From Pelomyxa schiedti (Eukaryota; Protista; Evosea): a stretch of 63,380 nt of DNA. The notes below the pieces were generated by a model. The model worked only from the letters and a program-made list of their open reading frames with translations. It was not told the DNA's origin and did no database searches. This document shows positions 35,599 through 56,867 of this stretch, piece by piece; within the stretch, counting starts at the first letter, position 1, and the number at the start of each line of letters is the position of its first letter. Made by a program: the position numbers and the translations under genes. The stretch is taken from NCBI GenBank assembly GCA_020536535.1, contig JAHLWZ010000358.1, positions 1 to 63,380 of the forward strand. The letters run 5' to 3'.

Positions 35599-38460
35599 AT
35601 GTCATCTTCGCAGGACGTGCCGGCACCGCACAACAGCAAACGACCGAGGATAAGCGCAGCCCCCCCAGCGCCGCCGTACGACAACGCCCGCGAGCGCACA
35701 GAGCCCGCGGCAGCAGCAGCCCCCAGCGCCGTCGGAGGCACGGGCTTCGTGCCGCTGCCATCCCCCGCGTCGCACTCGACGACCACCACCACCACGGCCG
35801 CAGCCGCGCCTACGGCGACAACAGCGACGACCACCGCGTCTACCGCCACGGACGACAGCGAGATCAACGGCAGGAAGAGGCCGCCCCCGGCACCGCGACC
35901 GCAGCCGCAGCACCAGCAGCAGCAGAAAAAGCCGGCCGCGGCGGGCAAGCAACAGAAGAAGCAGCGGCTCAACAACACCCGCCGGAAGCAGGTCCGGGCG
36001 CAGGCGCAGGCGCAGCAACAGAGGCAGATGCAGGAGCAGGAGCGTGGGCGGGGGGACACCGCGGAATGGGCCGAGGGAGGGGGTGTCAGCAGCGAGGGGG
36101 AGTGCGGGGAGCAGGACGGGGTGGAGCGGGAGGCGCGGGCCGAGGCGCGGATGAGCTACGCGGTGCGGATGCAGGCGCGGGCCGCGAGCCTGCGGGCGGC
36201 CAAGGCCCGCGGGCCGATGTTCGGCCTGGGCTGGGTGTCGGGCGGCGGCGCCGGCGGCGGCGGCGACGACGACGACGCGGGCGCGGGCGCCGACCCCAGC
36301 ACGCAGTACTCGGAGGCGCTGGGCGAGGCCGCCGTGGCCGACTCGGCGGCCCCCGCGGCCCGCTGGTTCGTGGACCTGCTGCGGCTCCTGGGCATGGACG
36401 AGTACATGGACCACGACCACGTGTGCCGGAAGCTCAGGAGCGTGGTGCGCCACCTGCTGGACCCGGTGCGCCCGGAGCAGCGTTCTCAGTGGTCTCGTGC
36501 CCCCGCTGCAACTGCAACTGCAACACCCACTGCCAATCCAACTGCGATTAAGGCAACTGCGAAGGCGTGTAAAATGGAAAATTCAAATGCAAATGCAACT
36601 TCTTCCGCTGGTGAAGTGGCAGTTGTGACTCCTGATATTATCACTGTTGAAACAAAAGTACCTACTTCTGATATCCAAGATCAGTCGCTCATTGAGAACG
36701 CGGTGGCTGAGTTTCTCAGAAAGTCTGTGCAGGAGTTGACGTCTTCAACGCACATTGATTGGGGTATCATTGTTGTGGGTTTGAAGAAGTACCTACAATC
36801 TAGCCTGTCCCGCAACGGCGCTCGCATTGGGCATGGCGACATATCAAAGATTAACACAAACTCCAATGCTGCATTCTGGGATAGAAATGGGAACATGCTC
36901 TCCAACGGAACATTGCGGGGCGCAATTCATGATCTACGTCACTTAATCTCAAAAGGTGCTGACGAGGCAGCACATTCCTGTGTGGATAAATTGTGGTTTA
37001 TGTGTAAGGAACCCGCCAAAGTTGCAACAGCCTATGCACCACCACCAAATCTCGTAGAGGCTGCAGGTCTTGTTACGGGGTTGCCAGACCTCCTGAATTC
37101 CATGCAGTCATTATCTCTACATCAAATAGCTGAAGTGAGTGGTTACTTCTGTGCTGTCAATTTACTGAAAGTGCGTTGTTCAGGATTTTGCTGGAATATC
37201 TAACTCAAACTCTAGGTCCTCCTTCACACAGTTTACACAAATGTACCCATCCCTCCTCACGTCTCTGCAGAATTATCACATTTGAAATTTCTTGATATTT
37301 GCTTCAGAACGGTTCCCTTGTGCAGCCCCCTCCGTCACACAGTACAGCTTCCAGATCCCATCCCCAAAAGCACATTGTGCCCAGTCGTGGTTGTCTTCCT
37401 CACCAAAATTTTCAAAGCACATACAATTGCTCTTAGGCAAAAGTGGAACGCCACTTTTGCTCTGCGTATGGCTCATCTGGGTAACACAATTTATGCAACT
37501 AAATGTGCTCTCCGTTGCCAATGGCACAAACAGAAGAAGTCAAAACATGTATGGAAAGAAAGTACAAAAGCTGTCAACGGAGGATCGGCACAAGCCTGCA
37601 GACTATTTGCCATTAAATACTCGAATTTCCCAGCCTTACTGAAGGCCTGCTTTCTTGGTGACCCAGAGGCAATGACACACCTCGCCTGGAGCATTTGGTG
37701 TGAAAGTGAAAGGAAGTGCTTGGTGGTCACTGCTGGCGAATTCATCCTTCCCCGCGTCATTGCTGCCCAGAAGGAACTTATTTTTTCTCTACTTGCCTGG
37801 GCAACTGCTGCAGGTTATACTCCAGCGTGGGTGTTGCTTGGTTGGTGGCTAGAGTGCACAGCCGGTAGAAGCCAAACGGGGAAATGCAATGGGACCTTTC
37901 TTGCAGCACATCTCTACCTCAACTTCGTTCTTATGAATGCTCATCTCCAGTACAGCTTCATTGACTCTTCAGTTTCCACACTATACAGCAAAGGCAGGAA
38001 GGTAATATTTCACAAACAAAAATCCAAACTCTCCTCCTAATCAGAAAAGTAGATCTCTAAGGTGTACCGCTTTGCTGTGATGCGCCTTGTCAAGTTGTAC
38101 CTCAGGGGAGACATACATTGTGGTGTAGGGGCCCTCACGGGTGGCATCCAGGACATCTTAAATGTGGTGCAAGCAGAAGCCCGGCAAGAACCCACCCCCC
38201 CTGACATGGCTCTTGAAATCGACCGGAATTCCCTTGCGGAATGCTTCCAGCACTCTAGCATGTTGAAGATATTCTCAGAAGAAAAGAGGCAGTGGATCCT
38301 ATCTGCATACTCACACCTACAGGGAACAATGCGGACCCTCACAGCACTGATGGCACATCACCCACGGGTGGGTCGTCAGAGCCCCCTCAGGGTTCTCCCT
38401 TTCAGGACTCTGTCATACATTGCTGCCCTTTCTGGTGACTTCACTGTATATCAGTGGTAG
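35599..38460 (+). CDS. Hypothetical protein: low-complexity GC-rich first exon, Sel1-like helical repeats, C-terminal HPRVG-SPL motif
   Basis: 534-codon first ORF plus downstream exons; GDPEAMTHLA and AAGYTPAWVLLG are Sel1-like; ends ALMAHHPRVGRQSPLRVLP...IAAL. Confidence 0.65.
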
Positions 38461-38591: not shown

Positions 38592-39845
38592 TTAAACACT
38601 ATTCAAGCTCCTCGGTTCCTTAAGTAGTGTCTTCTCTGATTGGATTTTGGGGGCAACGACCGGCTTCCACAAGACTATCAATATCAGCACGGCTGGAAGA
38701 AGATCCAAGAATGGTTGGAACAAAAGTTTGCTAATTGTGGTGCCCACTGCGTTATCAGAGAGAACAAACATGTCAATAATAATCATCCCGGACCGCAGTA
38801 GAAATACAACAAAAAACAGAATTGCTGGGAAAGTTACCTGTGGTTAAAGGAATTAATACCCAGAACAGGAAGAAGGTATGAAGAACGGGGTACCCGTTTT
38901 AGGACTTGACTTGTGCGCTCCGATTTCAACACTGAATGATTTTTCACATGCACAAACACTACAACCCCAAAAATTCCAAATGCTTTAAAGAGTTAGGTTT
39001 TGATTGTTTCTTTTAAGGTCAATAAAGGAAACGCACCCATGCCAGTGACAAATGCGAGTGAGGCAGCATATATAGCCTCTATTTCATGGAATAGGTCCAT
39101 GGCTTCCACGCCCATCAGGATCAACAGTACTATCCAAACAAGATATACAAGGACATTGACTGCTGAGTAAACCTAAGAGATAGTTACCCAATTCAAGAAG
39201 TTTGCACCATTTACCATCAAAGTTGCCCGTTTCACTCGTGGTACTGTAGCAGAAGGAATTAACAATCCAACCCTAGGTGGCTTAGATATCTACAACCCGT
39301 AGTGGTTCAGGATACCAAAAGCAAAACATGAGACTATAGGCAGAAAAAAATAGGTAGCCCGGCAAACCCTAGGGAAGTTTAGAATAATGGCGGGGAAAAA
39401 AAATAAATGGAAGAAAAATACCCCTAGAAAAGTTTGCAGTAAAGTCTGTTTATTCAGGGAAGTCTCAAGATATCCATCCCAGAATATGCTCATCTCAAGA
39501 GCACGTGCTTCATAATAGCATTAAGCAGGTGGAGTTTTGATTGAAAAAGATGACAAAGGAGGAAGGCAGTGGCGCACACAAAAGCGGAAAAGGGATGAGT
39601 ATCAATGTTCCCTTCCTCACAGAGAACCCCGAGTAGGGCTCTCGCACTAAAATCCAAATCACCCGCGCGGCTGAGATGCCAAACGCAATGTAGAAACAAA
39701 CAAGCTCTGCCCAGAACACGTCGTACATCCAATCAGCAACTTGCGTGGTGCTTGAAGACATCGATGACGACCACGACGCGAGGGAAGGCGAAAGCGAAAA
39801 CGACGCGGACGAAGACTCGTTGAGCCACAATGACGACGACGCCAT
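38592..39845 (-). CDS. Multi-pass (probably 7TM) membrane protein, THH1/TOM1/GPR137-like
   Basis: Ser-rich N-terminus then successive hydrophobic helices (FYIAFGISAARVIWIL, VCRATYFFL, NVLVYLVWIVLLIL, FFVVFLLRSG, FLDLLPAVLILIVLWK). Confidence 0.6.
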
Positions 39846-40207
39846 TGTGGGAGAAGACCAACTCGATAATTGGCCGAAAACCAAAGAGACAGCGTTCCGG
39901 TCTGTTGATTATTTTATTATGCCGTTGTGGAAGGACTATCCTATCTGTGGAACTGTCTGGATCCGTGCTCGACCCATGTTGTCTGAAAGGTCTGGGAGAC
40001 CGAAATCTCCAGTCACGAGACTCAGGGAACAGACAACAAAGAATTGATAATTCTTAATTATGTCAGATCTCCAGTCATGGGAGTGCCAATAAAAGGGGGA
40101 GGCCAGAGCTGGACATCATGGAGATGCAAAAAACAAACAGACTGCCAAGGTGGCTCTGAACATTGGACACACCAAAAATGTAGCTTTGAGGATTGAATTC
40201 CACCACA

Positions 40208-40481
40208 TTGCTGCCTCATCTATCACAGGATAGACTCTGGGTCCATTTCAAACATCACACTAGTTGTACCACTGTGTCTCTCTCCATGCCCTACCTAACC
40301 TAGAACACCCTACTAAAAGCTTCCCCTACTGCTTTTAGTAGTGTTTTGTGACAGATAGGGCATAGAGAGAGGCACAGTGCTGAACAGGCCATCTGGCCTT
40401 CCATATAAATGCATGTGTGGTACAACTAGTGTGACATTTGAAATTGACTCAAAGTCTATCCTGTGATAGATGAGGCAACAA
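40208..40481. ncRNA. Long fold-back hairpin A (candidate hairpin-RNA/pre-miRNA or foldback element)
   Basis: 40208-40272 pairs with 40417-40481 (65 positions, 59 Watson-Crick); inner 40270-40320 pairs with 40331-40379; 10-nt loop. The structure is directly visible, the RNA function is inferred. Confidence 0.55.
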
Positions 40482-40631
40482 CATATTGTATTTTTAATGT
40501 TTGGCAGTACAGACATCTGTGCACAGAGTTGTCAGGGACCTTTTTGACTGTTTCATTGAAAAAGGTCCCTGACAGCTCTGTGTGCAGGTGTCTGTACTTC
40601 TGAACATCAAAAATACAATATGTTGTACCTC
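40472..40631 (+). ncRNA. Long fold-back hairpin B (candidate pre-miRNA)
   Basis: 40506-40545 pairs with 40559-40598 with no mismatch if G-U is allowed (36 Watson-Crick, 4 G-U); 13-nt loop; stem extends to about 40472/40631. Confidence 0.6.
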
Positions 40632-40790
40632 TATTAAATGATGAATCACAATCACAACACTGTTTTTGATGCTTAAATCAGACTGAAAGGAGTTTAGGCA
40701 CCCATTGAATACAACACACGGAAAGAAGTATTGACAAAGAGAGGAGGATTGGGCATCTTCTAGTTTTCGTCGAACGAACTTCTTGGTGTG

Positions 40791-43700
40791 ATGGCGGGAG
40801 CCAACACATGTCGAGGCCGGAAGTACGTGCTGTGTGGCGTCTCTGTCGATTTTCCGTACGAGGCTTATCCCTGCCAACTCGTGTACATGGAAAAAGTTAT
40901 TCAAGCGCTCAACAATGTGTGTGCCAACTGATCTTTTTTTTTTTTTTTTTTCTTCCTCTTTTTTTCTCTTTTTTTCGCCGTCCATTTTTGTTGTTGTGCG
41001 TTGGTGTTAATCTTGTTGCGTATCCTCAACCTCTTTCGATTATCAGAGGCAAAATGCACTCTTAGAGAGTCCCACTGGCACAGGCAAGACTCTTTGCCTG
41101 CTGTGCTCTGCTCTCTCTTGGCAAAGAGAACAGTTGTTGGTCAAGTTGCAGTACAACTGGGTGGATTCTCAGGTCATGAAAGCTGTTCAGGAGGACGAGG
41201 AAGAAGACGAAGAAAAGGTGGCTGCTGACACTGCTTCTGCTAAATCTGTTGCTACTGCCTTGGTCAAGTCTGTTGTGGATAATAGTTCTTGTAAGAACTC
41301 AAGCGAGGAGGTCGGCCATACCACTGTTGTTCCCTCCTCAGGCAGTGTCGGGCTTAAGAACTCAATGGGAGATAGCGGCAATGATGATAGCACCTTGGTG
41401 TTTGATGTGTTCCATGATGATGTTTGCCTGGATACACACGTTGACAGCGTTCAATCTTCCAGCTCAGATCACACTCAGCAAAGTGAAGAAACGGAAGAAG
41501 AAAAACCACCAAGACCTCCTAAGATCATTTATACATCAAGAACCCACTCCCAACTCACACAAGTCATAAAGGAATTCAGAAGATCAAGTTACCAGTAGGT
41601 TTTTATTTCCCTACGTCATACAAATGAACAAACAACCAACCACAGAGTGTCAAATGGCCTTCTTGGAGCACGGTCCCAGCTTTGTTTAGAACCAGCAGTG
41701 CGTAAATTACCTGCCACAGCTCAAAACCAGGCTTGCAATGCCCGCACATCTCGCAACGAGTGTAAACTTCGCAACAATTTATCGGGTGGAGTAGCAACCA
41801 AATTAACAGTTCTTTCACTGATAGAGCTATAGATAAACAAGTTGAACACCCCAAAGATTTTTTGGAACTGCTCCGGGCAACTGTGGATGACAAAGTGGCC
41901 TGGGATATTGGTGATTCCAGTACACTTTTTCCCCCAGTTATTCTAACTGGTTCACCCAAGAGGATCTCGAAAAAGTTGGAAGAGAGAACAATATTTGCCC
42001 CTATTACCTTAGTAGAGAGACAATTCAAAAAGCAGACGTTCTGTTCATGCCATACAATTACTTGATCGACCCAAAAATACGGTGAGTAAAATCTCAGCTT
42101 AGTCAGTGTTCCTGTTTCACAAAGTTTCAGTGCCACACAAGCAATAGATTGGACTGATTCTGTGGTTATATTTGACGAAGCCCACAATTTGGTACTTACA
42201 TTAGATTCCTAAAAAACAAAAGGCTAACGACTTCACAGGATTCTGTGTGCCAGGATGCTATTTCCGTGGAACTAACTCCAGAAGACTTGAATGGTTGCTT
42301 GCGGGAACTCGATGACTGTATTGAAGTACTGAAACAGAATACTATCCCAACTGAAAACAACCCTCCTCTTGTCGATTTTTTTCATCTCAAAGGTAGAAAT
42401 TTTATTTTATTACTACCCAATGTTCATTATCCCTCAGATATTATTGCCGCCATTCAGACTCAAATTAGTGCATTGTACACTGCTGTCCGTTCTGGTGCCC
42501 CTCTGGATGTCAATCCTCGACCAACAATCTCTACTGATGGTGACAATTATCGATGTGCGACCTTTGTTGGAAGTTACTTCCGCAACCTTCTTGAAAAAAG
42601 TGGAATTGCTGGTGATCAAGGCGACACAATTGTTTCCATTCTGTCTACCGCAGTGCAGAGCTTGCAAGATGGTACCATCCCATGGGAGGAGAATCAAAAC
42701 TTTAGACTGGCATAATAACTGGACACTATATAGCAGGATCACAGCATGCACATTTAGACCACTTCTCTGAGGCACTTAAGCTATCATTCTTTGTTGAACC
42801 CAAAGATGCAGACAGATACCTCAAGGTTCATTCACCATATTCTATTTTTAAAATTGAATCTTAGACACTAGTAGGTTCATATCTTCACTCAGAAAAGTCA
42901 GTGGTGCCTAGGATATTGGTGTTTTAGTCCTGCTCTCGCACTCCGTTCCCTACTTGGAACTGGAATTAGATGCATGTAGGTATTATCTACTTGACCTATT
43001 GACAATAAGCAACTTCTCTACCAGGATTTTGACTAGTGGTACATTATCTCCACTTGACGCGCTAGAGCAAGAGCTTGGAGTACCGTTTCCTATCAAATTA
43101 GAGAACTCTCATGTGGTCCCACTCGAAAACGTATGGGGTTGTATTGTTTCTTCTGGTAAGTAAAACGGTTTCAATAATATGCCTCTTTTTACACAAACTT
43201 AGGTACAAGAAAGATAGTCCCTCTTAACTCAGGTTACCAAAATCGCTCCTCCGCAGCATATCAAATGGAAGTTGGGGACATAATAGGTATTGGAGTGGAC
43301 CCCTTGTCCTCTCATTCTCAAGTTATCCCAGCTGGTGTCTCGCGGGTAACACCTGGTGGAGTTCTTGTATTTTTTCCGTCATATTATATGCTTACATCTT
43401 GCATTACTCTTTGGAGCCAAGAAGTAACCTTCTTACCCATATAAATGAATACTGATTTGAAAAAGCGCAATGGTGCTTGCATAATGAATTTAATTAAACA
43501 GTACAAGACTGTTGTCACAGAGGTGGGTCTACTTGGCCCTAATTTTACCAGCTCACATGACCTATGTAGCCACGAAATATGACCCAGTTCAATGCCGTAA
43601 TACAACAATATAATGATGAGGTGGCTCAACCAACAAACCGCGGTGCCATTTTTCTAGCTGTTGCGCGAGGCAAGGTGTTTACACCCCACCTCCTACAGGA

Positions 43701-52342: not shown

Positions 52343-53323
52343 GCAACAAACTACAACATTCCCAGTAGTTACACCATAACAAAATACAAAGATCACAACC
52401 ACAGCAGTACCACCAGAAAAAACCACACAAAAATAAAGAGGAAGAATTGAAGTATTTCTTTCCAAAACTTGTTCTTTTGTTTCCACTCTCATTCCATTTC
52501 GGCATGTTGCTTCCCCAACTCTTAGAAAGGGAAATCAAATGGCTGCATAAAATAATCAACAGACGGAACGCTGTTGATTACCTGGGTCTCTTTTCTGCTG
52601 AGAGAGAATCCAAGAGAATAGAATTCATGTCCAATACAATCAGCAACCCAAAATGTGCACTTAAAATCCACACCACTCACACTCTTGCTGCCTTTTGGTC
52701 CGCCGGTCTTCTTGCTTTTGCTTGGGGTTCTCTAGTGATTATATTAGTCAATGGAATGGATTAATATACGCCATAGTAGAGTGCTGGCTGGCAGCCCGAA
52801 AGACGCCCACAGCAGGACTCCAAAGTACGGGGAGAGCCGAGCCTGAGAAGGCTCCCCCTGAGGTGTGACACCCTCCAAAACCAAACCTCAACGACCACCC
52901 CACCAGCAGCCCTCTCCCACGAGAGAGGCTTGGCAAAATGGCTGAGAGGCAGGGCTTTGGCAATGCTGCATCAATCCGATCACGATCACGATCACTTCGG
53001 GAATCAACGGTGAGCAGCACTCCGTTTCATGTGCCAGAGTACTAAAAGCGAGCACGAGCCACCAGCAAACACCCAGCAGGCACCCAACACAGCTTAAGAC
53101 AACACGTAGATCGAGCAGCAAAACAACGTCACACGTCACTTGCGGAAAACCTAACCGCCAGTCACCGGCACTAACCCGCGCTTTTTTTTCCTGTTCTTTG
53201 GATCTCAAAAAAGATTCATGAAGGTGTTTCATTACCTCCTGAAAGGTTCATTCGAGGTGGGCCCTGGAAACAACTTGGTCTGGAAGTTCCGAGGGGAGAC
53301 AAAAAAAAAATCAGGAACACTGT

Positions 53324-56565: not shown

Positions 56566-56867
56566 TTTTTCGGGTTGTCCAATGTGTGAGGCTAATAGAT
56601 CGCGTTCCCAACTTGGTTCCCAGCGGGGCCTCCGAGCTGGCTCACATCAGACAACTCTCTCGTGTCACACAACATACCGCACAAGGGACCCTGGCACTCC
56701 CGAAGATCCGAATGAATGGACACTGGCCTCCTGACCGGTTGGCGAATTTCTCATTTGGCTGAATAAAAAAAACACCAGACCGCAATCCTGAGCGATGATA
56801 AGGAAAATGACAACGTTCCGGTCTGTTGATTATTTTATTCAGCCATTTACAGTTTCTTCTCAGAACA

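Follow-up and report, generated by a model that had tools for sequence, protein, structure and literature searches.

What role, if any, is played by the long and nearly perfect inverted repeat that lies just upstream of an RTEL1-like helicase gene in the anaerobic amoeba Pelomyxa schiedti, and is it the RNA or the DNA of this locus that has shaped its mismatches? The repeat, here called hairpin B, is situated in a window of 63,380 nucleotides (the whole stretch of DNA analysed, contig JAHLWZ010000358.1) of a genome that was assembled into 52.4 Mb and 5337 scaffolds from micromanipulated cells through a single-cell approach with GenomiPhi MDA (PMC8887013), the deposited assembly comprising 52,367,397 bases in 5337 contigs. 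The original prediction described it as a pre-miRNA-like stem, the G-U pairs of which hinted at selection on a plus-strand RNA. The work reported here leads to another reading, held tentatively, namely that an old local inverted duplication has been silenced in the manner of a repeat and is probably a source of hpRNA-type siRNAs.

Table 1. Coordinates of the features discussed (window positions unless a contig is named).
Feature	Position	Strand	Description
Hairpin A	40208-40481		274-nt fold-back, ~111 pairs
Hairpin B, left arm	40478-40550	+	Repeat search and pair table; pairing extends to 40472 with one indel
Hairpin B, palindrome centre	40551-40553		Effective RNA loop 40546-40558 (13 nt)
Hairpin B, right arm	40554-40626	+	Repeat search and pair table; pairing reaches 40631
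CpG-free run	40017-40718		703 nt; encloses hairpins A and B; flanks CpG-dense
RTEL1-like helicase, exon 1	40791-40916	+	Exon 2 from ~41047, with Walker A (ESPTGTGKT) and start of DEAD_2 domain
Probable divergent upstream gene, first exon	39620-39761	-	ATG at 39761, GT donor near 39620; from reading of the sequence
TATA(A/T)A	40404-40409	+	Only one in 39900-40900; 68 nt upstream of the hairpin B base
MITE copies in the window	56753-56845; 39870-39918; 52546-52567		Full; internally deleted (+); diverged
CpG-depleted domains, contig C791	90361-94000; 157300-160100; 172300-172900		73, 76 and 24 genomic matches, respectively
C5-cytosine methyltransferase domains (PF00145)	C902:6486-6833; C151:24841-25206; C829:24213-24608; C1048:11181-12555		Domain matches

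The repeat search returned two arms of 73 nt (Table 1), 86% complementary, 3 nt apart and mismatched at 10 of their 73 positions. The pairing described in the original prediction was reproduced by our pair table in its 40-bp core (40506-40545/40559-40598; 36 Watson-Crick and 4 G-U pairs, closed by the 13-nt loop) as well as in its extension to about 70 bp, which contains two further G-U pairs (40502/40602 and 40503/40601), an 18-bp perfect run (40478-40495/40609-40626), one A-C (40496/40608) and one C-U (40505/40599), so that 6 of the 8 stem mismatches are G-U; its distance of 160 bp between the hairpin end at 40631 and the RTEL1 ATG at 40791 is likewise correct. Folded as RNA, the plus strand attains a minimum free energy (MFE) of -108.5 kcal/mol (z = -19), which none of 200 shuffled sequences reached, and the minus strand attains -95.5 kcal/mol (z = -17); the plus strand is more stable by 13-16 kcal/mol, and by 15.7 kcal/mol in the core alone. 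The structure of hairpin B is far beyond chance. It has the defined hairpin secondary structure that is asked of miRNA loci (PMC11014262), and it also has the long near-perfect inverted repeat with a short spacer that characterizes hpRNA and inverted-repeat (IR) siRNA loci.

MDA generates inverted chimeras, and such chimeras have identical arms, whereas the arms of hairpin B are only 86% complementary. Moreover, four runs from one sample, which must be DNA because their contigs run through the RTEL1 introns, show zero differences within 40208-40631. Therefore, hairpin B is genomic, and an inverted chimera of MDA or assembly is ruled out. Separately, one of these four runs, X4, departs from the others across RTEL1 (position 40053 and 41142-43298): about 20 single bases differ, a deletion of 3 nt is present at 42407 and an insertion of 1 nt at 42123, amounting to about 0.6-0.8% elsewhere in the 4-kb stretch with none in 40208-40631. 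Alleles, variation between cells or errors of MDA at low depth may account for these changes. Run X4 also contains a joint between opposite strands at 40985/42032, as is typical of MDA chimeras.

Own-genome BLAST gave self matches only for 40440-40660, 40478-40626 (E≤10) and 39930-40790 (E≤1), and hairpin B is a single-copy sequence in the 52.4-Mb assembly, which is ~82% complete. Membership of a high-copy MITE family, which the original prediction had named as the result that would count against it, does not apply, as many dispersed copies would be expected of a MITE. The genome does possess a MITE-like family, the elements of which are ~93 nt long with imperfect terminal inverted repeats (TGGCTGAATAAAAAAAACACCAGACCG ... 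CCGGTCTGTTGATTATTTTATTCAGCCA); a 22-mer of it has 347 matches (≤2 mismatches) on both genome strands, its read depth is ~100x the local depth, and it is unrelated to hairpins A and B. No direct repeat flanking 40472/40631 or 40208/40481 was found that could be a target-site duplication. Against Rfam, no match of hairpin B exceeded the gathering score, the best falling well below it (mir-5014, 60.1 vs 101 bits; mir-3938, 45.5 vs 94; mir-3926, 42.5 vs 82; mir-2012, 38.3 vs 90), and some of these sub-threshold miRNA matches fall on the minus strand too; they represent generic hairpin similarity. Without an Rfam match above threshold and present in one copy, hairpin B appears not to derive from another structured ncRNA or a repeat. 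It is a DNA palindrome whose arms are separated by 3-13 nt; it did not arise as an artefact and belongs neither to a MITE family nor to any catalogued family of RNAs.

A census of inverted repeats covered 318 kb, made up of the window together with various other loci and 200 kb from contigs C791 and C790. With arms of at least 35 nt at ≥80%, it contains only hairpins A and B and one pair of MITEs arranged head to head, and relaxing the arm length to 24 nt adds one 25-nt pair and MITE copies; in the about 255 kb sampled outside the locus, no non-MITE fold-back with arms of at least 35 nt was found. Two large fold-backs abutting each other are therefore exceptional. Hairpin A, which overlaps hairpin B by 4-10 nt and is unrelated to it in sequence, is built in tiers: its outer arms measure 65 nt (91%) and its inner arms 39 nt, its tip has 17 nt, and it carries an insertion of ~37 nt at 40380-40416. 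Its MFE is -162.5 kcal/mol on the plus and -172.7 kcal/mol on the minus strand, the latter being 10 kcal/mol more stable. A direct repeat of 12 nt at 40192/40704 does not exceed what chance would give.

The main argument of the original prediction was that, on the plus strand, six G-U pairs stand against a single A-C, a ratio thought to hint at selection. The counts stand, but the ratio is not significant, with a two-sided binomial p of 0.125. Decay of a perfect palindrome was also simulated under neutrality, with 8 substitutions and the MFE difference between the strands as the score, and a difference at least as large as the 15.7 kcal/mol of the observed core was reached by 5.4% of the runs when the transition fraction was set to 0.6 and by 9.8% when it was 0.875, i.e., p = 0.05-0.10. 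Further, four of the six G-U pairs are contributed by two TG/TG doublets (40502-3/40601-2 and 40520-1/40583-4). A palindromic CG/CG site decaying in both arms turns into TG/TG, with two G-U on the plus strand, into CA/CA, with two A-C on the plus strand, or into TG/CA, with pairing restored. Since each doublet arises from one decayed CG/CG site, it represents one trial, and the ratio becomes 4:1. The neighbouring hairpin A leans the opposite way, with one doublet of the opposite type (CA/CA at 40253-4/40435-6) and, over its whole stem, 8 G-U on the minus versus 4 on the plus strand. The suggested selection on a plus-strand RNA is not supported. Divergent selection, acting on the minus strand of hairpin A and the plus strand of hairpin B, was not adopted either: the outer arms give 10:2 (p = 0.039), a post hoc figure, which becomes 14:5 with the whole hairpin A stem and is lower again once CpG doublets are counted once. 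The G-U bias is real, but it does not show selection on a plus-strand RNA, the case for which is weak, and we infer that CpG to TpG decay, together with chance, accounts for most of the excess. More generally, tandem TG/TG wobble pairs arise by mutation in the palindromes of a CpG-decaying genome, and therefore a G-U excess in such hairpins is by itself no evidence of RNA selection.

Both hairpins are enclosed by a CpG-free run, a new observation here, which has 0 CpG in 40017-40718 between flanks with 27 (39719-40016) and 13 (40719-40880). The window has no longer run of this kind, and in 263 kb only one exceeds it; among 424-nt windows, just 0.35% lack CpG altogether, and the genome as a whole has a CpG observed/expected ratio of 0.65, the value for TpG/CpA being 1.23. 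Within the 263 kb, every other CpG-free run of at least 429 nt falls into one of three domains on contig C791, all of which are dispersed repeats, so that the link between such runs and repeats comes from three domains on one contig. These domains are sharply bounded (e.g., 19 CpG vs ~156 expected in 3.5 kb), and their ORFs match no Pfam family. Since the abundant MITE family keeps its CpGs, the depletion is not universal among repeats. The hairpin locus carries the repeat-like CpG-free footprint though it is single-copy, its own inverted arms being its only repeats. In a different part of the window, positions 36000-36450 reach 77-79% G+C inside a 534-codon open frame (35599-37203), with ~45% around it.

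Three decayed CpG doublets, two in hairpin B and one in hairpin A, imply that at least some of the decay postdates the duplications, and we infer that, once these had occurred, cytosine methylation was directed to the locus over a long period. MDA amplification erases 5mC; it is the CpG mosaic of the assembled genome that suggests repeat-targeted 5mC in Pelomyxa, and C5-cytosine methyltransferase domains are encoded at four loci (Table 1). In another amoebozoan, Acanthamoeba, repressive 5mC on repeats has been reported (PMC12344493).

As to the RNA side, the Dicer and Argonaute genes to which the original prediction had directed attention were found as Piwi and Dicer-like RNase III domains, albeit with weak accessory matches. 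At least 4 contigs carry Piwi domains; RdRP is present at 2 loci and RNase III at another 2, one of the latter with an upstream PAZ match (E 8e-4) and the other with a C-terminal dsRBD match (E 8e-5), both weak and below the Pfam cut-off. With Piwi, Dicer-like RNase III and RdRP encoded, the machinery to dice a 70-bp hairpin is thus present. One RdRP (C351:50873-54715) is an intronless frame of 1280 codons in a genome averaging 7.4 introns per gene, and the Atlas clusters closest to it consist of metazoan-type RdRPs that have a PH_met_RdRP domain, a result of no taxonomic use.

Hairpins A and B sit within a spacer of ~1 kb between RTEL1 on the plus strand and a probable divergent gene on the minus strand, the first exon of which matches no Pfam family. 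The TATAAA at 40404 is a weak candidate promoter that could drive a separate plus-strand transcript. Directly 3′ of hairpin B, at 40634-40641, a TATA-like TATTAAAT suggests, as a weak single motif, that RTEL1 starts downstream of the hairpin; if so, the hairpin would probably be outside the RTEL1 5′UTR. A U6-type small-RNA gene is ruled out. At least 20 U6 snRNA genes are present, and all 8 of those examined have ACCCATAA, a Dictyostelium DUSE-like box, ~60 nt upstream and end in T8-11; in 39900-40900, this box (≤1 mismatch) is absent from both strands, and T5 runs occur inside the hairpin B stem. An RTEL1 homologue at JACLAD010007030.1:17341-23655 has no intron at the position of Pelomyxa exon 1/2, and no inverted repeat of at least 20 nt was found in the 6.3 kb of that locus, which belongs to a distant eukaryote, too distant to inform on conservation of the hairpin.

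Based on these findings, we tentatively propose the following course of events. First, an inverted duplication would have formed hairpin B in the spacer between RTEL1 and the divergent gene, beside hairpin A. The spacer, as a bidirectional promoter, may then be transcribed through, this being the most likely trigger, and the read-through transcript could fold into a dsRNA hairpin of ~70 bp, which Dicer-like enzymes would cut into heterogeneous siRNAs. Upon loading into Argonaute, these siRNAs could mark the locus in cis, and either they or a recognition of the repeat at the DNA level would recruit cytosine methylation, by which the CpGs would have been erased and much of the apparent wobble bias produced. 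The fullest version of this proposal, an hpRNA locus at which a single-copy inverted repeat recruits RNAi-guided cytosine methylation in an archamoeba, i.e., an RdDM-like process outside plants, appears unlikely to us. If true, it would point to a possible epigenetic control of RTEL1, a genome-stability helicase, through a CpG-free island in its promoter region.

The main rival of the silenced, hpRNA-type locus is an inert palindrome: template switching or repair by fold-back would have created two inverted duplications in an unstable promoter spacer, which undergo no transcription or dicing and decay neutrally, their CpGs having been lost to DNA-level methylation of repeats or to local composition. 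This is a serious possibility, though we find it somewhat harder to accept than the reading above. It is consistent with a G-U bias that is non-significant, partly CpG decay and reversed in hairpin A, with the lack of a DUSE promoter and of a detectable trans target, and with the fact that recognition of the repeat at the DNA level would give the identical footprint without any RNA. The run search with 39400-42400 likewise returned four runs, none recorded as RNA, although this 3-kb query is too long for an RNA of 150 nt. However, both stems show only ~6% non-CpG divergence and no indel in their arms of 65-73 bp, and no decayed older palindromes were seen in the 255 kb; transcriptional silence would hardly be expected of a spacer flanked by divergent promoters, and a full RNAi set is encoded. 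These points argue against an inert palindrome.

Part of the original prediction concerned the class of RNA, and here the stable hairpin is real but its near-perfect stem of 68-73 bp looks more like the hpRNA type than like a miRNA precursor. A miRNA-like gene would have its plus-strand transcript folded and processed by a Dicer-like enzyme into one dominant 5p/3p duplex, with its wobble pairing maintained by selection. The excess of G-U among the stem mismatches, the higher stability of the plus strand and the TATAAA 68 nt upstream fit such a gene, as do the amoebozoan miRNAs in being mostly intergenic, species-specific and plant-like, a few with precursors >200 nt (PMC11014262). Against it stand the p of 0.125, or 4:1 with the CpG doublets counted once, the maximum Rfam score of 60 bits against a threshold of 101, a stem far longer and more perfect than that of usual precursors, and the failure to find a target or a homologue in its own genome, in the JGI metagenomes or in viral contigs. 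Whole-genome BLAST (E≤10) found no extended complementarity elsewhere that would indicate trans targets, and a 19/21 match of a 21-mer at C791:85028, seen in 353 kb scanned, was rejected as a target, ~13 such matches being expected by chance in 52 Mb. The apical-stem pattern of hairpin B gave 0 matches in the JGI metagenomes, and a 21-mer search gave 0 in the viral contigs. For a 163-aa antisense ORF over the hairpin, no encoding transcript contig is on record, in a search from which the genome records of the window itself were possibly excluded. Hairpin B is probably not a precisely processed miRNA, and a miRNA-like gene in general seems improbable.

We give equally little credence to a relic of a transposon or foldback element, the other copies of which were lost or are missing from the ~82%-complete assembly and which would have been methylated as a transposon. 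Its CpG-free footprint equals that of the dispersed repeats, its structure is one of long terminal or internal inverted repeats, and a truncated MITE lies 290 bp away. Nevertheless, no part of 39930-40790 has a second copy at E≤1, and the edges of the domain show neither a target-site duplication nor terminal repeats, nor does the domain contain a coding remnant. The poorest candidate is a cis-regulatory element of RTEL1, acting as a 5′UTR hairpin that blocks scanning or, within the bidirectional promoter, as an insulator or DNA cruciform. Its place in a spacer common to divergent genes, at a distance of 160 bp from the ATG, would allow such a role, but the role is very unlikely, since a hairpin of -108 kcal/mol in a 5′UTR would almost abolish translation, the TATA-like motif suggests a start 3′ of the hairpin, and the distant RTEL1 homologue, too distant for much weight, has no upstream inverted repeat.

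Among known systems, the MITEs and foldback transposons resemble hairpin B in being short non-coding units of inverted repeats, but hairpin B is present once in 52.4 Mb, has no target-site duplication and is unrelated to the MITE family of its own genome (~93 nt, about 350 matches). With the amoebozoan miRNA genes, such as those of Dictyostelium (PMC11014262, PMC6161686), it has in common an intergenic position, lineage specificity and a plant-like long hairpin, whereas their stems are imperfect and membership requires mapped, precise 5p/3p reads; their usual precursors are 75-125 nt long, the few >200 nt being read as newly evolved (PMC11014262), and the surveys took in no Archamoebae (PMC11014262, PMC6161686). 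Hairpin B stands as a rare, single-copy and concrete test substrate for the Dicer-like enzymes of Pelomyxa. To our knowledge, the small-RNA biology of Archamoebae is known only from Entamoeba, the pathway of which is unusual and the small RNAs of which bear a 5′ polyphosphate, and we know of no miRNA or hpRNA locus on record for free-living Pelomyxa.

The closest likeness of the silenced duplication that we propose is with the hpRNA/IR endo-siRNA loci, i.e., the Drosophila hpRNAs, the plant IR loci and the 'young' MIRNA genes, which also are long near-perfect inverted repeats at a single locus with a short loop, in hosts with Dicer-like, Argonaute and (optionally) RdRP genes, here recognized as domain matches. 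Plant IR loci attract DNA methylation, and 'young' MIRNA genes are born by inverted duplication. The differences are that hairpin B is known from sequence alone, that its stem (~70 bp) is shorter than those of classic hpRNAs, and that its arms match no founder or target gene, whereas hpRNA arms are derived from or complementary to their target. For Pelomyxa, we know of no description or map of 5mC. The sharply bounded CpG-free domain with its TpG/CpA excess resembles repeat-directed 5mC with CpG decay, as in Acanthamoeba (PMC12344493) and in plant RdDM, but here the sole repeat is the inverted one within the locus, and methylation is read from the CpG loss; as a hint from sequence only, this loss suggests that the methylation system of Pelomyxa may treat inverted repeats like transposons.
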